From Amphiscolops sp. MND2022 (taxonomy: Eukaryota), in NCBI GenBank assembly GCA_964187785.1, contig OZ076420.1, positions 18,538,001 through 18,602,000 on the forward strand: DNA of 64,000 bases. The letters run 5' to 3'. Both the position numbers and the translations under genes were made by a program. How positions within the stretch are numbered: the stretch's first letter is position 1; the number at the start of each line of letters is the position of its first letter. The notes under the pieces are model-generated. The model saw nothing but the letters and a program-made list of their open reading frames with translations, made no database searches and had not been told where the DNA came from. Below are positions 6,521-60,959 of the stretch, one piece after another.

Positions 6521-7825
6521 ATTTAAATCTCAAATTTAACTTCAAGGTTTGTAGTATCTAGTCTCTTAATTGTTTTTAGACGACGTTCGTCGGTATATTG
6601 AGTATTAGAATTTACTTTATGAGTGGCAAGTTATAGAAAGCGGGGATCTTGACGAGGACTAGAGACAAGAGAATCTTTGACATTCAGCACGAAAAGGTGT
6701 GGGTGGAGAAGAAGATTGACCAGTGGTAAGGTCAATTTTTAGGAGGTGCGTATCAGAAGAAAGAACAAAAGAGTTTTGGGAAGTGGTTCGGGAAAAAAGG
6801 TGTCCAGTAGACAAAAACAAGACGAGGACAACTAAGAGCTTATGTGATAGAATCAACATCACTCAAAGGATATTTTTCACTGAGTGTGTCAAAAGGTTCA
6901 AAAACAGGGATTGTTAAAAGTTTGGCGGTGGAAGGAAAGGCTCAGGTTGAGAGTATATGCACGATTTTGAATGAGAAAGTGGAGGATCAAATTGAGAGTG
7001 TCTACGATGACCTTTAATAGAAGTAGGATTTAAGGTTGATTTACGAGATTGAGGTTTGTTAACAAATCTTCATATCACTTCGCGTCAATATCACTATGAT
7101 CAGTAAAATGAGGATGAAGAGAAGGAGAATGAGTTGATGTGGTATCAAAAGTAGTCAAAGGGAATTCAGTATCAGAGAGAGAAGATTTGAATATTTTTGT
7201 GGTAGTAGTTAAACAGGAGTTGTTTTAGGAGTGACTGTAGGATTATTAGTATGAGTAGTAATTAAAGAGAAGGTGATAGCGGTTTAAAGGAGGACGATGT
7301 GAGACGAGAGAAGAGATTTGAGAGGAGTTAATAGCATCAGTAGAAACTGTGGAGGCAACAGAAGAACTAGAGTCTGTAGAACTAGGGGATGAAGGAACAG
7401 GAGGATCCAGGATGGAAACAAGAAGAGTTATGAAAAGTATTATTAGGTGTTGTTGGTATATAATGTATTTGTACGCTTAAGAATTATTTTGTCGAGGAAT
7501 GTGTGTTAATAGATATGTGTTTTATTAGGTGGTAAATTTCAAAAAAGCTGAGAGATTCATTAGCCTTAGTGTTTACCCGACTGTTCGATCAAAGATTATG
7601 AACAAAATGAGCAAAAGGTATTTATGGAAATGGCAAATAAATAGATTGTGAATGTCAAATGCCAGGCATAAGTAAGTGTCTAGACAAAGGACAATTCAGC
7701 GAAAATCTGACAGGTAATGCAATTATAGATTCATTTTAAAGTTAAGAGGGGAAGCTTTTAGTGGGTTTTGAGTTATGGTAATCTTTCGGTGGGCGAAGAA
7801 GTAAATTATATGGCGAATGAGGAGC

Positions 7826-9700
7826 TCAAATATGAGTGGGAAAGGTTTGAGAGTCTTGTGAAGTTTCAAAAGAGAGATTGGGGGAGTCAACAACACGTGC
7901 ATAAAATTGAAGAAGCGAGGTAGAATGATAAATAGAGTTTTGGAGCATTTCAAAATCAGAGTCTGTGGAGTTAAAAGTATCATCTAAATTATCAATTAGA
8001 GGAGTGGAAGAAGGAAGATTTTGATAAATAAGGAGAGATTCGAGATTTGAATTTGCCTGTGCAATGGTTTTGATAGAAGTGAGTAGGTTAAAAGGTTCGA
8101 AAGGGGTGTCAAATTCAAGTTGAGGTGATTTTAGAAGCAATATCTTGATAGGAGTCTGTATCCGGGTCGTTAAGATTGGAGGGAGTTGAATATGGACGGA
8201 AATATGAGAAAATACTAGGTTCTTTGGGATAAGATGGCAAAACGTGATTGCAATGAGTGTGAAATGTAGAGCCATCTTGGGCCATATGTTCATACGTAAC
8301 ATCGGAGAGATGTTGAATTTTTTGTACGGGACAATTCGGAGGGGTTTCGGTCTCTTGGAGGATTCAACAGGTTTGAAGTTTGTGCGTATAACAAAGGCGT
8401 TTAGAGGAAATGGTTTTGACTGAGTTGTTTGAATTGTCGAGTTTTGTGAAGTGAATTTATTAGTTATATGACGATGAACAGTAGAATATATTTCTAGCAT
8501 TGCATGTTCTGCTGATACAAGACATAAGGAAATAGGTTTGTTGAGGAGTGAATGGAAAAAACGATTAGATCTTTGTCACTGTAATGTGCATGAGTGGGAA
8601 GTGAATTACAGTGTGTGGCAATAGAGTTCCTATAAGAGTCACGTAATAAATTGAGAGGAAATGGTCAGGGGAAACCAGGGTGTGTGGGGAAAACAATTTC
8701 ATCTTGGGAACTTTTAGGTTGAGAAAAAGGGGTAGTTTTGTGAGCATAGTCATACATTTGAGTTTGAATTGACCAATTAAAATGAGGATTTTATAAAAAA
8801 AACGCAGGTGAACTCCAAGATTATGATTTTGGACTTCGACTAAACCATTTGTCCAAGCGGAACATGGAGTACGTGGAGAGTGATTGTTATTTAAGAGAGG
8901 GAAAAAACGGGCCATATCTCGATTAATATAATCAGTGCCTCGATCAGTGACGAGCATTGAGGTGGGCCAAACTTAGTAATCCACTGATGGATTATTGTTT
9001 GAATAGCATATTTGGAGTAAATATGAGGAGCAGGGTTAGTGACAACAAAGTGACTGAAACTATCAATGAAAACAAAAATATAAGAGTTTCCTTGTGACGA
9101 AGGAGAAAAAGGTCCTTCAGGGTCCATGAAGACTCTATAGTTAATCAAATTGAACTGGGTTTCCAATAAAAGGTAAAGGAGGTGCAATAATATTGGATTT
9201 AATACAAATATGTTCGTTAGTTTGGCATTCAATACAATCATGACTGAAAATAGAAAAACCATTAAGGTAAATGAGAAAAATGATAAAACTGGTTGAAAGT
9301 TTTAATGGAGAGTTTTTCACCGGAATGACCATGTGAATGGATTATATCGGAAGCAGCACAAAAAAGTTTAAATGACGTTTAAATAAACGAGTGCGAGTGT
9401 GGTTAACAGAGGGGTTTAGTTTTAAAAAGACTTTTTCAAATATTTTGGAGTTGAGTGTATAATAACAGATTAGATGGGAGTTTCGGTCAAAATATAAATG
9501 TTGAATTTGCTTGTGAAATGTATAGAGAAAAAGCTTTGATTGAACATCTGGAGGCAAAGTGAAAAGTCTTTGTTGTTGTAGAAACAGTCGCGAGAACAGG
9601 GTCATTTCTTGAACTCGAAGAACAATGGGTATTATTCAAAAGGTATTAGATGGAAGGAAAAAATTTTCAAGAGCATTACAATGAGTTAAAAAGGATGGAC
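7826..9700 (-). pseudogene. Integrase of element A (fragmented)
   Basis: ORFs 8891-9262 (C..C, DPEGPF, FIDSFSHFV), 8565-8957 (TDRG, GLVE) and 7826-8500 (GPY-like PLRIVPYK). Confidence 0.9.
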
Positions 9701-45379: not shown

Positions 45380-48300
45380 ATAAATTTGGAATATTCAAAA
45401 TAGAATGCCAATAATTGAAACGAGACAAATGGCAACAGGCCCGTGAAAACAACGATCCAAACAACAAAAATCCAGGCAACCAACCCAAAAGTGACACTTG
45501 CGGCAAAAATTGCAAAACGGACGGTTGTTGAAACGGAGCTAACGCAGCTGACAATCCACGACCAAAGCTTCCATTCCACGCAGAGCGGAATACGGAAACT
45601 ACTTTAAAACCAACCTCTGCTGAAGAACCACAAAAACTCGATCTCGACGAAGACCCTGCTAACAAGAAGGTTATCAGTATTCTGTACTTATCACTGGGTG
45701 ATGCCGCGAGAAAACAATTAATGGGCAAATATCCGCACACCGCCCTGTGGGACTTAAAGGCCCGAGAGTTAATCATTTTATGTATCGAATGCTTTCAGAA
45801 AAAGAGGAATAGAACTCTAGACAGACATCGAGTTTTCTCAAGACGTCAACAGCCCGGCAAAACCCTATTTCATTTCTGGCACGCCATAAATGGGCTTCCA
45901 GCAATGGGCGACTTCGGGGAAATAATATCTACTTTAGTTTTGGACATGTTTAAACTACACATGAACAATAAGAAGGTGCAAGGAGAAGTGTTGCAATAAG
46001 AAGTTTCCTTAGAAGCAGAAGGAGATGATGCAGCGATTGAAGAATCGTGATAACGGAAAAAGTTTGCGAAGAGTAAACTATATCAAAGAATCGGATGAAG
46101 AATTTGCAGACGACGACAAAGAGCACCTAGTGTTGTGTGTATATGGAGACGGCAGCAAACATTTCTACATGGAAGGGACAATGTGTGGCAATTATTTCAA
46201 AGCAATTATTGACACCAGGTCGCCAGTCTCTTTTTTTACAAAACGGGCGTTACACAAAATCGTGGGGGAAAGAAAAGTAGTGATCAGGGATATGATCGAG
46301 GGAGAACGTTATGTCGAATATAACAAAAAACCCCTGGAATTACTTGGATACCAAATTGTACGGCTCGACGTCTCAGGAATAACAGTGTCAAAAGCCCGCC
46401 CGAGTCTTAGGAGCACCTAATTCGTGAAAATCAATTGTGGGCCGTGATTGGCTAGTTGCTCTCCGCTACAAACTTACGCAGCTAATAGAAAGAAGGGAGT
46501 GTAAAACAAATAAACAAAAAGTAAATTTTAAAGAATCGATCTGCGAGATAAGTCTCGAGGAAAAACGAAACCCCGAGGCTCTGCAATTAGTGAGGGAATT
46601 ACCAAAATTGTTTAAACGGAAAGGCCGTGTGAAGTATTACGAAATCATCAAAATTAAAATGGAAAACGATGCAAAAATTATCCAACAAAAAGGACGCCGA
46701 GTACCAATTCAGTATCAAACTCATGTAGCTAAAGCAATTGACAACCTGTTAAAGGAGGGGCATATTGAAAACAATGATGAAACTCAAGATGATGTGTTTA
46801 TTCAGCCAACAGTAATAACTGTCAAAAAAAGATAAGTCTGTGAAAATTGCCTTAGATCCGAGAGCGCTAAAGCAATCTATAGTAAAAGACAAATACCAAA
46901 TGCCTAACATAGATAATTTAATCGGCATGATTGCAGAGAAATTACATGAAAAAAAGGGAGTCGTGGTATTCGTCGGTAGACATGACTTATGCGTACGGAC
47001 AAACTCCCTTACAAGAATTAACTATAAGACACTGCAATTTTCAAACTGTTAAGGGAAAATCCACGGGCACCTATCGCTTTACAACGGGATTTTATGGCCT
47101 TACTGTAATGCCAACAGAAAGTCAGAAACTAATGGACATCACTTAAAAGGAACCAAGCATGAACATTTGAACAAGGTGAGAGAAGTAAAGAAAATTCAGG
47201 ATGAAGCGAATTCGCAGTTGAAGGCAGAAAAATGTATGATCGCACAAGAAAGCAAAGGATGATTGAGGTACAAACAAACGCGAACAGGTATATCCTCAAT
47301 AAATGCAAAAGCACAAGGAATAAGCAAAATGTTGAGACCACCGAATTTGGAACAATTGCGCTCAATTCTTGGAGCGGTCAATCAATTTAACAAATTCATC
47401 CATAATTTGGCGAATATTAGTTTCCCAATTAAAACACTTTTGAAGAAAGACGCGGACTGGATATGGAACGCTGAACATGAAAACTCATTTGTGAAACCAA
47501 GAAATTCGATCTGTTTTCGATGCAAACAAGCAAGGCCTAGGTGCAGTTTTACAACCAAGTCAAGTCAATGGTGAGTTGAAACCAGTTTGCTTCGCTTCTA
47601 GGTTTTTAACAGGTTTTGAGTCAAAATACTCCATTGACAATTAGAACTATTAGCAATAGTGTGAGTGGTTGAACATTTTAGAAATTATGTATATGGTGTA
47701 TAGCTTAAAATCAGTTCTGTTCACAAAGCACTAAGGACGGTATTGGAACCAAATAGGGGAAACAAAACGTTTTCCAGCAGGTTAACAAGAAAGGTAGATA
47801 GATTACTCCCATTTGACTTTGAAGTAGTACACGTGGCAGCCAGAACGTTAGGAATGGCAGATTATCTGTCGAGACATTCCACAGAACTACAAGGATCATA
47901 AATAAAAGCAGAAACCCTGTGGAATGAATGGTTCACTGTAAATAGCGTAATTATGTTTTAGGTAACAACGAAGCAAGCAGCGAAAAAAGCAAGCCGGCGG
48001 TAAGTGCGAATGAAGCGAATGCTGTTAACCGCCTGAATCAAGTAAACCGAAGACAGCCAACCAAAACGCAGGACAAACGCAATTCGCGGTAAACAACTAG
48101 GAGCCATTGTAGTAATACCGCGCACATTCGCAAGATGAGTCAAAGTCTGCCAATGAAATTACTGAAAGAAAAGCTTTTGCCGGTGAAGTACATCGCTGAT
48201 AAACTAATTCAACGAGTTATCCGTTTAGTGAAAAAATATAATAAAGCCGGAGTTACCCGTCTGCCGTCCCTGTGGATTCCCAGCTTTCTCGCTTGATGAC

Positions 48301-50190
48301 CGCGATTCCCTATACATGGATAATAGATTGGTTATAGCGCAATCAATGAGGCCAATGACTAATGTGCTCTCTTCATTATGGCCATCGGGACCGAGACGCA
48401 ATGCTCGCAATGATTGAGGACATCTGGTGGTCCCGCATTCACCGGGAGGTAAATGACCAGGCACGGTTGTGCGAACAAGGTCTCGAATCAGGTTAGAATT
48501 TAAAATACATGTTGAAACAAAAACAAACAAAGAAAAAACCGGAGGTGAAAAAAACAAAACAAAGAGGTGGCTCTAGAGTTTGCGGGACCCTTCCAAAATG
48601 CTAAAAAAGGGGAAAAAGTATTTATTAGTATCTGTAGACCATTTTTCGGGATGGCCAGGCGCGAAATTTTTACACAGCCCAACAACTGGAGAAGTCATCG
48701 AATTTTTAAAAGAGTATATCGCACAGTACGGGTTACCAACGAAAATACGCCCGGATCCAGATACAGTATTTGTGAGCGAAGCATTTACTCAGTTTTGGGA
48801 AGAGTTCGGAATAAACCACATAACCTGTCCGATTAGAGACTATAGGGGCAACGGAAAAATCGAACAGTTGATCCGAACAATTAACGAGCGACTCTGGATG
48901 AATAAGCAAATTATCCTAAATAGGGTTATATCTGGACTGTCTGAAATCTTATACTCATTGGGAATAAGTAAGAAAAGGACGAGAAATCGACATTTGAAAA
49001 GCATATGCTGAAGGAGCCAAACACGGTAAAATCTAACTTAGTGAGAAATATTCGGGATTTTTCTGCCTAAGACTCACAAGTGGAATTCCAGCCCTCGGAG
49101 TTTCATAACGAGACTGACTCTGCAATATTGGTCCGCGAGTGAACCAAGGGTTCCAAACTGGAAGCAGCCTTTGCCAGAAAAACGAGAAAAGTGGTGCAGG
49201 AAACTCAGCACACAATCGCGATAGCACCCGAGAAAGCGAAGCGGCCAAAAGTTTTTTCAAAAAGAGACATCGCATGCGCATCATCAGAGCAAAAAGTGAC
49301 GCTCAAGAAAACTGGAAGAAGAGCCGGAATAGATGATACGCCCAGCTCGAGTGAATCAGAGCAACCCGCCACCAAGAAGGGAAAGGCAAAGAAATGGGGA
49401 AAAGCGAAAGCCCCAGATATGGCCATCGACTTTGATGAAGGAGCGCCCCTTTCCGTTTTTGACATCTCGTCAACCACCACAGTAAACGAAACAGCACCCA
49501 AAGGAACTGCGGGACAAGGCGAACAGAAAAAGGAAAAAAAGAGTGCAAGACTGAGGAAAGTGCCCCGAAAGCGACCAGCATTTCTGACAATGTGACCATT
49601 TCCGTAAAAGCCACAACATCGTGGCAAGTAGAAAGAGGAGTGTCTGAAAGAAAGCATGTCCACTCAAAAAGATATGGAATCGACTTAATCACGAAGAACC
49701 CGGAAACTCGGCTTGAGGCCGGATGAGAAGTTAATGGGGAAAACTGCTAAACCACATCATCATCTAAACATGTTTAGTTGCAGGTGTTACCTGCTAACTA
49801 GTATAAACTGATCATATTACTGATTTTAATTAGAGTTTGTATTATCGTATTATCAAGTAGTTGTGGGTTATGCCCAAAAAGGGGGAGTGTAGTAGAGTGA
49901 TGAATCGGAAACAGTTTTTAAATAAGTTCATGTAACATTGTCTGAACCTAAAATTTGCTACACCTCATTTGCGTGAGCCTTAGTTTAAAAGACACTACCT
50001 CAACATTCTAAACTCATCATCAATTCACATTTATCCCCTCTATTGTTTTCATTCAATTCGAGAATTCCACGTCAACATAGTTACAGCGCGCCTGCGTTAT
50101 GGGAAACAGTGGACGTTAGGGCATACATCATAGAAGATGCCCCCAACTTGAACAGCAGCATGTAGCTGAATCCCGACGGAAGACTGGCAA
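45380..50190 (+). mobile_element. Degenerate Gypsy element E (gag-PR-RT-RH-IN, PPT, start of 3' LTR)
   Basis: gag LYLSLGDAARK..YPHTALWDLKARELI..RNRTLDRHRVFSRRQQPG; PR IIDTRSPVSF; RT IALDPRALKQSI..VDMTYAYGQ; IN LVSVDHFSGWPG..RPDPDTVF..GKIEQLIRT; AAAAAGGGGGAG|TGTAGTAG at 49888; LTR end not resolved. Confidence 0.88.
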
Positions 50191-51400: not shown

Positions 51401-51751
51401 GTACAAATATGATTATAGACCCATTGAGAGTCCACATATACCCCACGGTCATCGTCTATAGTTGTAGGATATAGTTCGAGGAAACAGCAGAACACGATTT
51501 ACAACCTTATCCTAATTTTATTGATCAGGAGTGCAGACCAGTATGACAATTTCCAATTGCAGGCATACTACTGCCCTTTTTCAAGTCATTGCAATGACTC
51601 CCATCACTTTATATTACGGGACCATTTTTCTTTTTCCGTTTTTAATCGAAACTACAACGAACTGCCCAAAAACAGTAACAAGTAATGCCGAAATCATACA
51701 AAGCAATTAAACAACGAACTTTACAGTCTATCTATAGAAGACCACAGCAGT

Positions 51752-52496
51752 TTATTTTCCTTTCGAGCAAGACCTCTTCGCACTGGATCCCCCATCTTTT
51801 GTCACGGATCTTNNNNNNNNNNNNNNNNNNNNNNNNNNNNNNNNNNNNNNNNNNNNNNNNNNNNNNNNNNNNNNNNNNNNNNNNNNNNNNNNNNNNNNNN
51901 NNNNNNNNNNNNNNNNNNNNNNNNNNNNNNNNNNNNNNNNNNNNNNNNNNNNNNNNNNNNNNNNNNNNNNNNNNNNNNNNNNNNNNNNNNNNNNNNNNNN
52001 NNNNNNNNNNNNCCACAAACACCAGGACGTCTTTGTTGGGCGCTATATTTATCAGCACTGGCTTCACGTTTGCTTTTTTGGCCGATTTGTGGTTGAATAA
52101 CCTGGCAAGGCACCTGTTGTTCGGATGCTCCTTGCAGATTTCACTGGAAGCGTCGATGAGATGTTTCTGGCCTAGTTGGAAGAGATACTCGGTTTGGTTG
52201 CTTGGTATTTCAAGGAACTCGTTCAGCTTCATACCTTTTATTTCTTCCCCATGGTAATCAGCCAGAATCTCTTCTTTGTCGATCTTCGCTGTCGTGATAA
52301 CCCCACGACCAAGACCTTTCACTTGTACGTCGCAGATTGCTGGCCAATGCTGCGACTTGCACCGTTTGGAAAGTGTCTTCTTGAAGCACTCCGATTGTTC
52401 GTGCTGGGCTGGCAGGAACAAGACATCGTGACGGGGGGCAACTGATGGAGTCTGCAGTGCCTCCGGATTCAGGCGATCAGTGACAATCTTGAATGT
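51752..52496 (-). CDS. Terminal exon(s): SET domain, PR-Set7/KMT5A-like; C-terminal motif lost in gap
   Basis: QHWPAICDVQVKGLGRGVITT..LADYHGE..YLFQL..IDAS..C.EHP..RLFNHK..ANVKP; acceptor TTTCAATAG at 52497 in phase with the upstream GTTTGT donor; candidate stop TAA within AATAAA at 51752. Confidence 0.85.
51813..52012. other. Assembly gap (200 N)
   Basis: Run of N inside the SET exon region. Confidence 1.
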
Positions 52497-52617
52497 CTAT
52501 TGAAACAAGGGATAAAAATAACATGATATACTTATGTTTTTCATCCAATAGTTATTCAAGCAGTCTTTTAAAGCAGTGTAACAACTGGTTAATTTCTAAG
52601 GTTCGTGAATAACAAAC

Positions 52618-54420
52618 TTTTTTGAGATCTTCTTCTGTGTTCCAGGAGTTCTTGTTGTAGAACTCAATGAGCCTCTGTCTGGTGGGGTTGACCTGGTTTC
52701 GTTTGTTGCTGCAAAATGTGATGATTTCTTTCGCTCGCAACACTTGTCAGGCATAACGCTGCGCATTGAGGCGTTTTGTCACACATGCGCTCAGTTGTCG
52801 TTCAGTGACCTCGTTGGCATCAGCCCAGATCATGTCGACATTTTTCCAGATCTCCGTTGTGGCCTGTGACTTCTTTTTGAAGACGGCGTCGCAGGATGTT
52901 GGCAGGGCAAGTGCTTGGTTGGCATAACCCTGCAGCACATCTTCCACTGTCTCCCGTGAATTCTTTTGCATGTACAACAAAATACAATCATTAACGAGCA
53001 ACGAAATTTTTCACAAGAATCAATTAACATTGTAGAAGTCAACTATGAAACGACTATACTAAAAGACAATTTTGAAAGTTTATAACTATTGCACATAGTG
53101 ACCGTTCAATTACTATTTTTGAAATTCTTGTACCTTGTCCATAAACTCTTCTGCAATTTTTCTGGGGTTAAAATTCATGTTTCCTTTGGACGTGACGAAG
53201 AAAAGTTCGGTCTGTACCTCTTCGGTGCCATCGTCCCGTGGGAACACCTTCTTGACCACTTGTGGGGATTGTCTTTGGAAATTGGGTCTCACGCCAAGGT
53301 GATAAACCCGCATCGCATTCACCACCCAAGAGCATATTTTATGCTGCGATCGAATAGTGTTTCCTAAAACAAAAGGTTTAAAATTCTAGAAAAGTGTAAC
53401 ATGACAGATACTTTTCATAAAGTGTTTCTTCATTATTACTTCTCTTGATTATTTTATGCTGCGATCGAATAGTGTTTCCTAAAACAAAAGGTTTAAAATT
53501 CTAGAAAAGTGTAACATGACAGATCCTTTTTATAAAGTGTGTCTTCATTATTACTTTTCCTAGTTATAAGAAGGTTTTTTCCATTCAATGTTCTGCTTCA
53601 TGTTTGCCAAAAATTGCAACAATTACCCAAAGATGGTTCAAGGCTCAGTTCGTACATGGTGTCCTGGCTTAGCTCGTCAAGCTGTGACACAACTTGGGCG
53701 ACGGCATGTACTGTCATAGCTAAAATGCTCTTCGCCATCACAGTGACGGGCTCAACATACATGTATAGATATGTGACAATGCCGTGGAAGAGTGTCAACT
53801 GTTGTTGGAACGTCAGCGCTCCACAAGTGTTGTACGCTTCTGCAATTTCCCGAACTGTCTTCTGAATTTGGGGGCCTACTTTCTCCGACCACTCCTGTCG
53901 GGGCAATTTTGTTCCTGGTTCAATTAAAGTCTTGGCAGTGAAATTGAGACTGCGCTCCAAAGTGCCGGTGCTAGTAGCAAGCGCAGTTGCCTCATAATGT
54001 TTTAGCCACGCTTGATCACTGGAGTTCGTGGGTGATGTGCTGCTTTGAGTATAACCGTTGTGACATTGGGGTGTTTTTGGGTCGAGAATTTGAGAGAAGT
54101 TAGGCGGGCACGGGATTGGATGGCCTAAGTACGACTCGTGGAAGGAGAAGTTACTATGTTGAAGCGGTGCAGGGGTGCTATGAAAATGATGATTAGCATC
54201 TTAGTTAAGTGGTTGTGGAGGCTGCATAGGAGTTAGAAAGGGGCTGCTGCTTTATGAATATTGGGTCAAATCACTGTTGTTAATTGAGAGACTTCCCAAG
54301 GAATCAGACATTCTGAGATCTAGTTTGAGTTTGTTTTTGAGTTTAGCAAATAAGCAGCTGGTCGATGTGGGTGAATGATAGTTGAATGGTTGTCCTTTGG
54401 CATGGAGCTCTTTAGAATTT
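52618..54420 (-). pseudogene. Exons encoding a low-complexity region, a degenerate tyrosine-recombinase-like segment and a pre-SET linker
   Basis: Exons ~54420-53627, 53363-53134 and 53042-52618 join in phase; motifs SILAMTVHAV, AMRVYHLGVRP, LFFVTSKG, LTSTML; in-frame stops at ~54253, ~54202 and 52748, and a frame break after LTSTML. Confidence 0.55.
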
Positions 54421-55298
54421 TATGTTGAATGACTTGGAAAGTGACAAACTCAATTCAATGACACCTATCATTTTTCAATTAACTCCCTAAATATCAATTT
54501 TTAATTTTATGGCTTGGTTGTGAATTTTACAGTAGAATGGAGGCATTGATAATTACACATAATGTGAAGAATCTATAATTACATGACAGGACACGTGGAT
54601 GGTTAATTGGAAAGTAGTAGTCCATGAGGACAATTTAAATCGCTCGGATTATTGAATTGCGCATTAGAATTGAGGCAATAATAAATAACCATGATCTGCA
54701 GAAACTACAATTTGATGATAAACCATGTGTAAGATTAATTTGAAGGTGGTGGTTCATGAATTTAGTTGTAAATTTATGGATTTTTTACAACGATAAAGCT
54801 ACTGGTTGCGACTCAGGAATTTTTAAAACTAACAATTATTCGGATTCAGGAAAGAATAGTATTTTCAAAAGAAGACCTTTACACAGAGGGTTTAACATTT
54901 GAAGAGGGATGTCTTCGAATGACTGAAATCCAATTTAATGTCTCTGGGAGCAAAAGCAAAAACAAGAGTGTGTTCGTTTGGACAACTGAAATCAGCTGTA
55001 ACGACTCCGGGAGCGAGAGTTTTGATTTAAACGAAATTTTATTGAACAATACATTGTTTTTAGCTAAAACTTTTGGCTAACAACGGTTACCTCTATGGTA
55101 GCTGCGTATTAGACGAAACATGTGTAAGTTTAGTTTGAAGGTAGTGGTTCATGAATTTAGAGGTACATTATGGATTTTTCAGAACAATAATGCCACAGGC
55201 TGCGACTCCAGAATAAAAAAAACTGTTTCGAAAATTTATTCTGGTATCTTCTAAAAATTTCTAATCTCTCTAATAAACAATCTAAAATCAAAATAATT

Positions 55299-55994
55299 TC
55301 AGTTTGCACAGTTAAACTCGTGTGCTGACGGGGCAATTGCAGCAATATGCTTGAATCTGCTGAACTCAGATTGCTTCCAGGGCTGAGCTGTTAGAGAGGA
55401 GGTCACGAACTGCTTTTGTTCCAGGTCCCATTCTAAAACAGTAACACAGGCAATAGTTAAAGCGGATTTAGGAAAAAACATTGTTTTCAAAAGAAGACTT
55501 TTAAACAGAGGGTTTGATGATTAACAAGGGGACTTTTCGAATGACTGAAATCAAATTTACCAACTCCAGAAACCAAAGCAAACACAAGAGTGTGGTCGTT
55601 CGGACGACTTAAGTTAGTTGTTACGACTCCAGGAGCGAGTGTACAGATTTGAACGAAATTTTTTCGAACTTTTAATTGTTTTAGCTATACTTTTTAGTTA
55701 ACAACGGTTACCTCTATGGTAGCTGCGCATTGGCCGGGGTGAGTCCATGATCCCCCGCGTGAGCAGTGTCAGGTAATCTACTGGCAAAGAGAGATCATCA
55801 ACTTCATATGGCTCGGTAGTGACATCTGGGACTGTGGCCTGGTGATCAAGCCCAACTTTTACTTCAACCTTGACATCGAAGCGCAGTGAGGCTTTTCTGA
55901 TGTCCTTCAGACTGGTTCGGCAAAAACGGCCTCCGCTGTACAACTGTAGAGTCGGTTCAATGTCCAGTGTCTCAATGCTAAAGGCTGGGAGAAC
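55299..55994 (-). CDS. Exons with ELM2-like and SANT-like motifs
   Basis: Exon 55994-55712 (VKVGLDHQATVP, cf. ELM2 IRVGxxYQAxIP) joins in phase 1 to the exon at 55432 (QPWKQSEFSRF, cf. SANT WxxxExxxF); stop at 55299 if no further splice. Confidence 0.5.
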
Positions 55995-56128
55995 CTAGAA
56001 CAAAACGATTGTTATTAAGTGGTTACAAAAGTGAATACCATAACATTACTTTGACTTATTATCATGAAAGTTAATTCAGGTTACCAAAAAATGCTTTCAG
56101 TAGGTTAACAAAAAAATATAATGCTAAC

Positions 56129-58071
56129 TTCTTTTGTAGAGGCTTCTTCCTCCTTGATCTTTGGAGTCATTTTTTGAAGCAGGCTCCTGTACCGGTCATT
56201 GGGCGGCACTCGCATCTTGCGGTAGTTGAAGAGGATTACACTCCACATTGTCGCCAAAGTTGGATATCTATAGTTAACACAGGAAGCCATGTAAAAATGC
56301 AAATAGGAATTTTGTAAAGTTAAAATGCTCCGGGGTTACGAAACACGGTTGAAAACTATAAAAGTGGGGATTGATGTTTTTATTTAGTATTATATTTACC
56401 GTAAATCCTCTTCCTCGTCAAAATGGGCATCGATAATTAAATCACTGTGTCCAGAGCAGAGGAAATTGGCACCTAGTGCCACGCTGTCGCCATGGGTAAG
56501 GACACAGTGAATCCATTTTGAAGGTAAAATAACAGCGTCGCCTGCCCTTGCATGGATCCTGTGACAGCCTCCTCCCTCCAACTGCTCCAGGTCTCCAAAT
56601 GATGTGGTTCTAAAAGACACACATTATAATTAAGACGGGTTTGGATGAAAATTGGCTCGACGTTTCATTTGGCTGTTTTTACAAAATCATGTTCCTGTGG
56701 GGGCAATTGTTTTTTTTCAAGAAATAATATCTAACAAGCTTCTTGGGTCTTTCTCGCTATACTGCTTGAAGAGCCTCAAGTTCTTCCTCGTTGGCTCGAC
56801 CAGCCAGAAGATTTTTTCCCCAAACAGAACCACATAAAACACGCTGGTGCTGGCAAAGTCGATGTGCCAGGGGGTCACACACTGATCGTTTGACAGCAAC
56901 AGGTAATTCCAAGTGCTCTGCGTTAGGAACCCGTCATCAGCCCCGGCTACCAATTTTGATTCCGCAAAACGGTCGACTGCGGCATTCTTCACGCAATTGG
57001 GTGGTGAGAAGATCTAAATAAAGCAACGAGTGTATTTGGTTTGTTTTTGTTTTGTATATTTTGGATTACATAGTAATTCATTCATATCAACAGTGACAAA
57101 CACCTTGCAAAAAACGGATAAAAAATCTACAAAAGATAACACTAGTTTTTATCACCTTGTGGCCAAGAGTGATGTCGATCACATTCACCGGGAAGAGATC
57201 TTTTTCTGCTGCTTCCGTTCCCGCGCGCTGCTCTGCAAGATACTCTTCTCTGGTCAAATGTCGCTGCTGAAACAAATATCAAATTGGCTGCATAAGCAAA
57301 GTAGAATTGAGAAAACAATAACTACACATGTGGTGAAGAATCTACCGCTGGATGATAAACCATTGCAAAACTATTTTGGAGGTAATCGTTCATGATTTTG
57401 AAGCTCATTGTGATTGTAAAATTTTGTGGATTCTTCGTTCCGATATATGTGAAGTATAGATACTATACTATATGTAAATATAATTTATGTAAATATATTT
57501 ATAACTGGATTCCAAAATTTTTATTCAGAAAAACACAAACTCTGAAAATCGAAGACAAAATCTGTTTCCCTTAAAGTGCCCTGCATGTGTACATGTCAAT
57601 TGTTGCACTCCCCAGATGTATTCAGAAGCTCCCATTTCACTTTTATTGAAACAAATTAGTCTAGTGTTACAGTTGTTTCTTTCTGACCTACGCCAATACC
57701 TGGTAAAAAAATATACGGAAAACAACAAAAGTTGTATATATAAATCAACTTTCAAAAAAACATGGTATCCATGAAATAAAGTTTTTAATTTCACCTTATT
57801 AAGTTTTGCCGACTTTGCTGCAATCGGGACATCGGGGTTAGCCATGTAACGAAGCATGTGCTCTGCTAAGGGCAGAAACTGCGTCGCTGCTTCATTGGGG
57901 ACATGCGGAATCACCAGACCTTCAGCGTGCTGCTTGGCGCCTCTCCATAAGATGGGAAAACCATGTAACAGGTAGTTCAACACCAGCTTAGACTGGTTTT
58001 CTACAGCCCCATTCCACAAAACGCACTTTTGGACGGCACTTTGTTTGGTCCCCTCAATGTGCTCGTAGTAC
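56129..58071 (-). CDS. JmjC domain, KDM2/KDM7(PHF8)-like histone demethylase
   Basis: Phase-consistent exons 57266-57156, 57013-56736, 56609-56400, 56267-56129; VTPWHIDFASTSVFYVVLFGEKIFWLVEPT and VILPSKWIHCVLT..ALGANFL; RYP..MW after the domain; N-terminal part in exon 58071-57795; join across 57795-57266 unresolved. Confidence 0.9.
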
Positions 58072-58267
58072 CTAAGAACATTCAAAAAACAATACCTAAA
58101 AGTTTTTATTCAGTGAAAAGTTCCACCCTTACTTCCATGGCAAGTATCCTCACCTTGAAAAAACAATTAACTCTCAAAGACTTCAAGGCATGAAATAATT
58201 ATTTTTTTGACTTTCTTTGCTGTTGTTCAACTGAAAAAAAGCTTTGGTTTTGACTGATTATCCTTAC

Positions 58268-58866
58268 CTATAGCTGCCTTTCTTGGCTGACTTTCTGGGG
58301 ACTCGTGAGAAGGCCATGTTGGGATATCGGTGATGGGGAGCTCGGTCACGGTGCCTCAGCAAGTTGCTGCGGGAAGAAAACTCCTGACCACATGCGTCAC
58401 ACGTTTTGCTTTTCAGCTTCCCCGTTACAGTCTCTGTAACATTAAAAGATATGTACTATAGCATCTCCTTACAAGAAAGTTCTCATAATGGGGGGTACGT
58501 TCCTATTTCGCCAGCACAATTGTAACACGATAAAAAGTTTGATATGAGCAGGTTTTTACTGTAACGAGCACGTTTTTGCGAAGCATAAGTATTACATGTG
58601 AGGAATAACTTACTGTATTTCCTCAGAGGCGGAAAAAGACCTTCTGCCAGCTCCATTGCCCTCGTAGCGCAGCTCTCAGTCCGTTGATGCCTTTTGAGGG
58701 CATCCTTAGTTGACACCGGCAGCAGACGTTTGTCACAAGAAAAGTGACTACTTCCTGTGGCTTCAGCCTGTTCGGTCTCAACACCTGTGCATTTTCCAAC
58801 ATGGCGGTTGAAATTGAAGAGCTTCTCTGTCTGGTAGGAGCATTTGGGGCATTTCTTGAGCGGCAT
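58268..58866 (-). CDS. First coding exons with three C2H2-like zinc fingers
   Basis: Exon 58866-58614 (CPKCSYQTEKLFNFNRHVGKC; decayed second finger CDKR..ALKRHQRTESC) joins in phase to exon 58433-58268 (CDACGQEFSSRSNLLRHRDRAPH); acceptor CCAG just upstream of the ATG. Confidence 0.8.
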
Positions 58867-58910
58867 TTCCTGGATTTTAAAAAAATGTTTAGTATTTTCG
58901 AATAATTTTC

Positions 58911-59065
58911 TGTCTTAACGCTCCTGGAGTCGTTGAAGTCTTGAATATTATATATACAAATTAAGTTGTCTCAACGCTCCTGGAGTCGTTAAAGTCTTGA
59001 ATATTATATACCAATTAGGCTGTCTTAACGCTCCTGGAGTCGTTAAAGTCTTTAATTTCTTATAT
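58911..59065. repeat. Three tandem ~55-bp units with near-palindromic core AACGCTCCTGGAGTCGTT
   Basis: Cores at 58917, 58973, 59027. Confidence 0.9.
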
Positions 59066-59569
59066 ATAAATATTTGGTGAATTTGATCAGGCTTTGGAAG
59101 TGGAGTTTTCAACTGGAGTCAATTAAGAGGATTCGAGAGTTCGAAGTAAAGCAACTGTTTTGTAGCTACACTGGTTGATTAACAACTTCAATACATGTAA
59201 CTCCATTGCCGAGGTCGCTAGATGATTCACAATGACAAACAAAAACTTGCGTGTCATGCTAAATACATGTACTTCCTCGTCGTAACTGAACAAGCATTAC
59301 ATGTAAGTAAGGTAAAAGAATTTTGAGGAACGAATGTATATCTTTCAATAATGTTCAAATGTTTCAATAAAATAGTTATGACAATTTTTTTTGAATTTGT
59401 CAAACAGGGTGATATAATTTGGTATCATTTGAACGCTTGATATTAAGTTAAAACTAGAAATCAGAAAGTTTTAGAAAACAGCTTTTTCTAAAATTATTTT
59501 TTTAAATTTCAATTGATATAAAGTTTTTCCAATTTGAAACAGGGCGACGTGCTTGATACATTTCATTTG

Positions 59570-59754
59570 AACGCTCCCGGAGTCGTTTCAAAATTACCAG
59601 TTTCTTTGAAGTTGAAATGACTTTCTGGCTAAAAGGACGATGCGTGAGGCATTCTATTTGAATGCTCCTGGAGTCGTTCTAAAATTAACTTCTCCTTACA
59701 CGTGATAAGAAGTGTTTGAGGGGATACATTTTATTTGAGCGCTCCTGGAGTCGT
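59570..59754. repeat. Three more spaced copies of the CGCTCCTGGAGTCGTT motif
   Basis: Cores at ~59570, 59661, 59737. Confidence 0.85.
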
Positions 59755-59796
59755 TCCAAAATGAACTGTTTCATTACACTTCATATGAGAAATGTA

Positions 59797-60279
59797 TTGG
59801 ACCATGTGATCTATTTCCCCCCCAAACTGCGATGGGGGGGGGGAAATAATACAGTAGGTTCAAATACTAGTTTTAAACGAATTAATTATGTCGACATAAC
59901 ATTTTAAACAGTCAAATACCATTATGTCGACATCGTTGCGTTGAAATTTTAGTCTAATAAAATAATTGATGTCGACATAATCACATCTTTTTCATTGATT
60001 GACAGTTAAAATAAATCATTATTCTTTGAAATGTGCTTCCAAACGGACATACTTCCATATTTACAAAACTACGAAATTTGCATTCAGCATTTAAAAAATT
60101 TGGGTCTTTTGCCACGAAGTTTAAATTCACGCGTTTGTTAATATTTGTAAGCATATCAACTTGTTTTATTCATTCAATAATTAATATACTTGTGAAAAAG
60201 CCGTTTTCGTTTTGGGGGGGGGGGGGGGGGAATTCCTAACAAGGTGTACCTGGGGGGGGAAATAGATCACATGGTCCAA
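59797..60279. mobile_element. ~480-bp MITE, TIR TTGGACCATGTGATCTATTTCCCCCCC, possible TGTA TSD
   Basis: 59797-59823 is the reverse complement of ~60253-60279; TGTA flanks both ends. Confidence 0.8.
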
Positions 60280-60514
60280 TGTATTTTTAAAAAACAAAAA
60301 TGTTCAGAACTTTCCCCGGTTCATCCCGGAAAGTAATTTAAGAATTAAAATCTAATTTGAAAAACATCCCCCCAACAAATTTAACTTCTTGTCATCTGAG
60401 AAATTTATATTTAAACGGGAGAGATTTTGAACTTTCTTTCCGCCGAAAAATATTTTTTCCAGAACTGAAGTTGGGGCTCAAACTCTTGTATTGATATAAT
60501 AATGAATTTATAAG

Positions 60515-60900
60515 AAACGAGGATTCCACAAAATTTAGAAGTGCAAATTCACACGAAGCGAAGAATCCACAAAATTTTAGTACCTATTTAGTGAAGAATC
60601 CTCGCGAAATAATAATTGCATTAATTGCCAAACTGAAGAATCCACAACTTTTGAAGAATCCACAAAAATTTTAGTGGACCTAATTAGTGAAGAATCACCG
60701 CAAACTAATGATTGCTAATAATTGCCAAAATGAAGAATCCACAAAATTTCAAGAATTCAGGAAAACAGTGAAAATTTTGTTTCGGCGATTCTTCGCAGGT
60801 TACACACGGTATTAGTGCAAGAATCCAGGAAAGTGTTCCACTCCACTTTCCTCATTTCTTGAAAACCCATGTATTGTAATCGAAGTGAAGAATCCACACC
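60515..60900 (+). repeat. Array of GAAGAATCCACAAAA motifs (probable subterminal repeats of a DNA transposon)
   Basis: About eight copies; shares the GAATCC core with the 2-bp-TSD family; no TIR found. Confidence 0.6.
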
Positions 60901-60959
60901 ACACTGCAACAGATCTGTTGCAGTCAAAACTTCCCTGTTTGGCGTCGTAATGTAAAAAT

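Follow-up and report, generated by a model that had tools for sequence, protein, structure and literature searches.

We analysed a 64,000-nucleotide stretch of DNA from Amphiscolops sp. MND2022 (contig OZ076420.1 of assembly GCA_964187785.1, positions 18,538,001 to 18,602,000; hereafter the window), which holds one copy of a repeated unit of at least 9 kb, running from position 60952 down to an assembly gap. The unit carries two tandem genes, both on the minus strand: gene A (58866-55299), with a predicted JmjC demethylase domain, and gene B (54311 to 52012, at the edge of the gap), with a predicted SET methyltransferase domain and a region remotely homologous to tyrosine recombinases. We consider the unit most likely mobile, with a two-gene chromatin module as its cargo, of which gene A is intact in this copy and gene B is a pseudogene.

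Gene A comprised nine exons separated by eight introns, all GT-AG and in phase, which together gave an uninterrupted frame of 616 amino acids. All of its splice sites were conserved in a 98% identical copy from another assembly (L005), and its exon borders coincided with the break points of tblastn matches to a paralog of about 75% identity (L004). These eight introns bear out a preliminary description of the locus, which had reported in-phase GT-AG junctions on the minus strand, and the join between 57795 and 57266 that it had left open proved to be an ordinary GT-AG intron. The same description had offered two tandem genes, divided by the stop at 55299, as one option; gene A indeed ends there, and gene B starts at 54311. 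The features are collected in Table 1.

Pfam searches were run on gene A exon by exon, with a cut-off of 24 bits for JmjC. Exon 5 scored 17.3 bits and exon 6 scored 25.4 bits; the domain is spread over both exons, which lowers the score of each. In phmmer searches against solved structures, exon 5 matched PHF8 (E = 2.3e-10), KDM7 (E = 5.5e-10) and KDM2A (E = 2.4e-9), and exon 6 matched the same family set (best E = 2e-6). Non-chance matches of the two exons were limited to PHF8, KDM7, KDM2A and PHF2, and proteins outside the PHF8/KDM7/KDM2 clade were matched at chance level only (E > 0.5; for example JMJD6, E = 2.1). The iron and 2-oxoglutarate ligand positions (H319, D321, K336 and H396) were all present, and the threonine at -3 of the first histidine aligned with PHF8, the 2-oxoglutarate-binding lysine and threonine both being kept. 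Pfam, phmmer and the residue positions thus agreed with the earlier claims of a JmjC domain with its iron and 2-oxoglutarate ligands and of a KDM7/PHF8-like assignment, and the domain is predicted to be a lysine demethylase domain, closest to the PHF8/KDM7/KDM2 type. Gene A shares with PHF8, KDM7A and KDM2A the HxD...H iron triad together with the 2-oxoglutarate lysine and threonine. Unlike them, it had no PHD, CXXC or F-box match in any exon in Pfam, carries two weak C2H2-like fingers and a C-terminal tail, and lies in a repeated unit.

The remaining parts of gene A were less clearly assigned. Three zinc fingers had been proposed; finger-like patterns do exist, but there are two of them rather than three, both C2H2-like and each under its Pfam cut-off. 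ELM2 and SANT motifs had been proposed as well. ELM2 matched 21 residues of exon 8 with E = 0.098, SANT had no Pfam match in gene A, and profiles built from exons 8 and 9 matched nothing relevant among solved structures, so that ELM2/SANT is a motif-level resemblance. The VG..Q...P motif and the Trp-rich tail were nevertheless conserved in the paralog L004. A protein search with the exon-5 open reading frame (ORF) found only two proteins, both from one species.

Several duplications were observed around gene A. The end of exon 8 and intron 8 have been duplicated into the spacer between the genes (window 54841-55110 versus 55463-55731, 80% identity). Modules of 100 bases occur in intron 3 and again in the spacer, and in L004 three of them lie 5' of exon 4. 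Contigs of runs X1-X4 (depth 18-42) join 55154 to 57419 via 8 other letters and thereby represent a deleted version of the unit without the JmjC exons; its joints lie inside the repeated 100-base modules.

Gene B has its own ATG, about 1 kb 3' of gene A, and consists of four exons linked in phase by GT-AG introns. Its Met-Ser start also opens the ORF in the paralog L002. The SET segment noticed earlier, and likened then to PR-Set7/KMT5A, scored 24.9 bits in Pfam against a cut-off of 22.4, and the solved-structure matches of the window SET piece were KMT5A/SET8 in 12/12 cases. A profile of eight longer relatives of gene B matched KMT5A with E = 8e-27 and MLL1 with E = 8e-10, and the model of one relative, P0013, aligned to SET8 with Z = 16.9, to MLL1 with 13.8 and to Suv4-20 with 8.2. 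The SET domain of gene B is, by prediction, a methyltransferase domain of the SET8/KMT5A type, the one family that the window SET piece matched. KMT5A (SET8, PR-Set7) is the monomethyltransferase of histone H4 lysine 20 (H4K20); gene B differs from it in that its SET domain is fused to a recombinase-derived N-terminus of 400 amino acids, and the end that would hold the catalytic tyrosines and the post-SET segment falls in the gap. The complete SET domain of the paralog L004 (L004:16903-17445) ends in ELRFNYGD, in which we take the phenylalanine to sit where SET8 has Tyr334, the residue that restricts SET8 to monomethylation.

In the window copy, gene B is a pseudogene, with three nonsense codons and its 3' end lost in the gap. 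Stops had been noted earlier in the 3' half of the locus, and we located three in frame (54254, 54203 and 52749). The corresponding codons were sense in all other copies (CAA, CAT and CGA in L005), and contigs of runs X1-X4 had each of the three altered to sense. The letters beyond the gap (51812-51752) had previously been joined to the SET gene. From 51812 downward, they gave no blastx match to the C-termini of 186 family proteins at E up to 10 and no match anywhere in L005. Since the SET frame runs into the gap and the letters after it are matchless, continuity and frame across the gap are unsupported, and the letters 51735-51812 are probably not part of gene B. Two further observations were made in this area. 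A 107-base stretch in intron 1 of gene B (window 53335-53556) is repeated about 115 bases apart with 97% identity and duplicates the splice acceptor of exon 2, and a retroelement remnant lies beyond the gap on the plus strand (window 45700-49600; integrase core domain 48580-49008, E = 2e-9).

Table 1. Features of the repeated unit in the window (window coordinates)
Feature	Position	Strand	Details
Left end of unit	60559-60952	-	Similarity of three copies begins at CATTACGACGCC (60952)
Non-coding 5' region of unit	58867-60558	-	97.7% identity to copy L005
56-base tandem repeats	58911-59071		Just 5' of gene A ATG
Gene A exon 1	58614-58866	-	C2HC/C2H2-like finger 58851-58789; ATG 58866
Gene A exon 2	58268-58433	-	C2H2-like finger 58401-58330
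Gene A exon 3 (amino acids 140-232)	57795-58071	-	31% identity kept in deep lineage L006
Gene A exon 4	57156-57266	-	
Gene A exon 5, JmjC first half	56736-57013	-	H319 56866-56864; D321 56860-56858; K336 56815-56813
Gene A exon 6, JmjC second half	56400-56609	-	H396 56509-56507
Gene A exon 7	56129-56267	-	
Gene A exon 8	55712-55994	-	ELM2-like motif VG..Q...P, also in paralogs; statistically non-significant
Gene A exon 9	55299-55432	-	TGA 55301-55299; SANT likeness of tail by eye only
Intergenic spacer A-B	54312-55298	-	272-base copy of exon 8 end and intron 8 (54841-55110); 100-base repeat modules
Gene B exon 1	53627-54311	-	ATG 54311; in-frame stops 54254-54252, 54203-54201
Gene B exon 2	53134-53363	-	
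Gene B exon 3	52618-52962	-	In-frame stop 52749-52747
Gene B exon 4, SET8/KMT5A-like SET	52013-52496	-	Pfam match 52310-52053; enters gap
Recombinase-derived region of gene B (amino acids 150-420, across introns)	52618-53864	-	
Assembly gap	51813-52012		
Letters beyond gap	51735-51812	-	No likeness to any SET C-terminus or to L005

The SET piece was searched against 1.8 billion representatives, which returned 148 proteins. Among the long SET-bearing proteins in this set, all but one were linked by N-terminal similarity under single linkage. One subgroup, made up of fish and other eukaryotic contigs, kept the motifs RPG, HKT, ARR, HS and HY, and the model of this fish-type subgroup (predicted local distance difference test score 84) matched only tyrosine recombinases, namely XerA, Cre, XerH, the Tn1549 integrase and lambda integrase, indicating that true recombinase-SET fusions exist. 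A profile of the fish-type N-termini had no match among Protein Data Bank sequences, whereas the fold search did match. Gene B fell in another subgroup (P0013, P0023 and others), which aligned with the recombinase core at an hhalign probability of 84% (E = 7e-6, 77 columns). The model of P0013 had low confidence in the recombinase-like region, and fold searches with the full model returned SET domains only. A word-indexed search with this region of P0013 found three proteins only, and a language-model search with the first 200 amino acids of gene B gave nothing usable. The catalytic Arg-Lys-(His)-Arg-His positions and the Tyr nucleophile were absent from gene B of the window and from 7/7 relatives of its subfamily. 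Of the segment earlier called tyrosine-recombinase-like, the remote recombinase homology stood in hhalign, but every catalytic residue was missing. Judged by this remote homology, the middle of gene B probably descends from a tyrosine recombinase and is catalytically dead.

The fish fusions (Melanotaenia, Zoarces and Dissostichus, annotated as 'hypothetical') belong to the same SET clade as gene B and have a homologous N-terminal region. They keep RPG...HKT...ARR...HS...HY and a Cre/Xer-like fold, whereas gene B has lost all these residues, and no JmjC gene was found within 10 kb of two of the fish recombinase-SET loci. Many recombinase-SET genes of Dissostichus eleginoides (P0010 and P0156-P0161) were seen on one 312-kb contig, and one annotated Dissostichus protein of 3363 amino acids resembles several recombinase-SET units read through. 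A recombinase-SET element that looks active may thus be arranged in arrays in notothenioid fish.

Further copies, for which the preliminary description had proposed a search, were found at 98% (L005) and 75% (L004) identity and in a lineage of about 30% identity, with the same pair of genes. L002-L005 come from one ENA assembly, apparently of the same species as the window. L005 was 97.9% identical to the window from 52013 to 60956, with different flanks on both sides, and L004, about 75% identical, had gene A and then gene B on one strand with a 3-kb spacer. In L003, gene A was gutted, and gene B was accompanied by tandem repeats of its 3' half (about three head-to-tail units, L003:9200-13800); L002 contained gene B followed by seven more 3'-half units about 2.1 kb apart (L002:2600-16200). 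The array unit in L002 and L003 consisted of gene B exons 2-4, including SET, together with a downstream 13-mer. In runs X1-X4, the region was broken into short, high-depth unitigs, and the depth over the SET end (52014-52213) was about tenfold higher, which fits tandem arrays of the gene B 3' half.

A three-way alignment showed that the left boundary fell on the same nucleotide in the window, L005 and L003, and that each flank was unrelated to the others, one being a Polinton-like element, one a region rich in retroelements and the third a different sequence. The left flank of L005 (L005:202-5565) was itself Polinton/Maverick-like, with a protein-primed polymerase B carrying an endonuclease VII domain and an adenovirus-type protease. 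The 13-mer TGTGGATTCTTCA occurred in five direct copies in the first 400 bases inside the left end (one mismatch allowed), and it occurred inverted, downstream of gene B, in L005, L004, L003 and L002. A TTACGAC direct repeat at both ends of L003 was rejected as a candidate, since the supposed flank recurs inside the tandem units of L003 itself.

Between the window and L004, dN/dS (the ratio of non-synonymous to synonymous substitution rates) came to 0.165 over 377 codons of gene A and to 0.181 over 547 codons of gene B, with dS > 1. Values this low indicate that the function of both genes was preserved during multiplication of the unit. For the window against L005, dN/dS was 0.71 for gene A and 0.38 for gene B. 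In L005, gene A was frameshifted in JmjC exon 5 and gene B was open, the reverse of the state in the window; the two young copies are decaying reciprocally.

The lineage of about 30% identity was represented by L006 and L007, which were 96% alike over 11 kb. Their order was a JmjC gene (31-35% identity to gene A), an ORF of 410 amino acids on the opposite strand and an intronless dead-recombinase-SET gene (27-42% identity to gene B). As a pair of genes shared with so distant a lineage, the pairing is old, and the opposite-strand ORF makes one transcript impossible there. A homolog of this ORF was also present in L004/L010, L010 being an extension of L004; neither the window nor the readable part of L005 contained it. 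Sub-repeat arrays with a period of about 183 bases bracket the JmjC gene of L006, one 5' of it (L006:424-1997) and an inverted copy 3' of it (7436-7890). Taken together, the copies showed that JmjC and SET are encoded by two distinct genes, which have moved together through many duplications under purifying selection.

This bears on the proposal of the preliminary description that the locus encodes a single multi-domain writer-plus-eraser protein. For this, an alternatively spliced form would have to bypass the exon 9 stop and connect the JmjC half with the SET half. The strand and order of both halves are indeed common to the window, L005, L004 and L003. However, gene B has its own ATG, which is conserved in L002, its relatives are stand-alone ORFs of 640-660 amino acids, the spacer between the genes measures 1 kb to 3 kb and is filled with repeats, and in L006/L007 the opposite-strand gene separates the two. 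Runs X1-X4, which resemble unspliced DNA, contained no joined form of A and B, and their sole joint was the 55154-57419 deletion. We regard a single gene as very improbable. Separate gene models and a repeated unit instead favour the other option raised there, a gene pair that is possibly transposon-borne.

In L002 and in L004, the latter extended as L010, gene B is followed by a multi-exon ORF that lies tail-to-tail with it. In the same assembly, relatives of this ORF grouped into protein clusters with as many as 40 members, and the language-model features of one relative, P0184, were nearest to RAG1 RNase-H/ZnC2/ZnH2 clusters (score 0.95, 176-179 shared features), with a weaker signal in another such comparison. 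HMMER found nothing, and for this reason we treat the RAG1/Transib-like identity as a lead only.

Whether a pair that multiplies in this way is mobile has to be weighed against a non-mobile host gene cluster in lineage-specific tandem expansion, with the boundary and the repeats left by segmental duplication. The tandem arrays of the gene B 3' half fit such a cluster. So do two other results that count against mobility: no right end, target duplication or terminal inverted repeat could be established (an inverted copy of the left end was sought), and the other assembly holds only about 3-4 copies from the window lineage of gene A. Against mobility, too, L005 might not be an insertion of its own but an allelic form of the window locus whose flanks are rearranged. 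To these must be added that no transposase is present in the window or the readable part of L005, that the RAG1-like assignment lacks HMMER support, and that runs X1-X4 behave as unspliced DNA with no spliced reads and so lend no RNA support. Against a host cluster, three copies end at one nucleotide beside three unrelated flanks, the window and L005 decay reciprocally, and the pair adjoins a multi-copy family of RAG1-like ORFs. We therefore judge the host cluster unlikely. An autonomous Crypton-like element, driven by a tyrosine recombinase in the N-terminal part of gene B, seems more improbable still. True recombinase-SET fusions are remote homologs of gene B, but the catalytic Arg-Lys-Arg-His-Tyr set is absent from gene B and from its seven subfamily relatives, so that its recombinase-like domain would be unable to cut DNA. 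A mobile unit carrying a two-gene chromatin module is the reading we prefer, and the copy in the window seems to be a shortened version of it that lacks autonomy.

If the unit is mobile, its proteins may work to its advantage by controlling the histone methylation of its own chromatin. In this scheme, repressive methylation at histone H3 lysine 9 (H3K9), histone H3 lysine 27 or H4K20 would be erased by the demethylase, and the SET8-like enzyme would write monomethylated H4K20. The fingers and the dead recombinase domain could be the DNA-targeting parts, perhaps acting on the 13-mer repeats at the unit ends. The window copy would depend on a transposase supplied in trans, for which the RAG1/Transib-like gene after gene B in the paralogous copy is a likely source. 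A more specific picture is conceivable, although we hold it tentatively and would not expect it to be right in full: a family of DNA transposons with its own histone-methyl writer and eraser, which set the chromatin of its copies, with longer copies adding a third conserved protein and a RAG1-like transposase, and with a disarmed tyrosine recombinase serving as the targeting arm of the SET8-like enzyme on the 13-mers.

We compared the unit with known mobile systems. Its likeness to Transib/RAG1-like transposons lies in the multi-copy ORF with RAG1-like features after gene B in L004 and L002. It differs from them in that the window contains no such ORF, that the sequence at the left end is CATTACG, whereas the Transib heptamer is of the CAC type, and that no 5-bp target duplication was seen. 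Kojima and Jurka reportedly described, in 2011, host domains derived from Cryptons (DUF3504) in ZMYM2-4 and QRICH1. Such domains have a tyrosine-recombinase fold without the catalytic residues, presumably for binding, and the recombinase-derived region of gene B may resemble them in this. Gene B differs in that it gave no DUF3504 match in Pfam scans and belongs to a repeated unit, not to a single-copy host gene. Mobile elements carry epigenetic enzymes in other forms, such as the TET/JBP genes of fungal transposons and the methyltransferase-like domain of DIRS elements. In full-text literature searches, no paper came up that describes a transposon carrying SET8-like and JmjC genes.

The window copy, itself short and half-broken, contributes gene A in intact form, a left end that can be defined and the interpretation of the gene B middle as a dead recombinase. 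Transposons are usually regarded as targets of host chromatin silencing. If our interpretation is true, this element would act as a parasite able to edit the chromatin of its own copies, with a demethylase and a methyltransferase kept under purifying selection down to about 30% protein identity, and it would link RAG1-like transposases, recombinase-derived DNA-binding domains and H4K20/H3K9 methylation.

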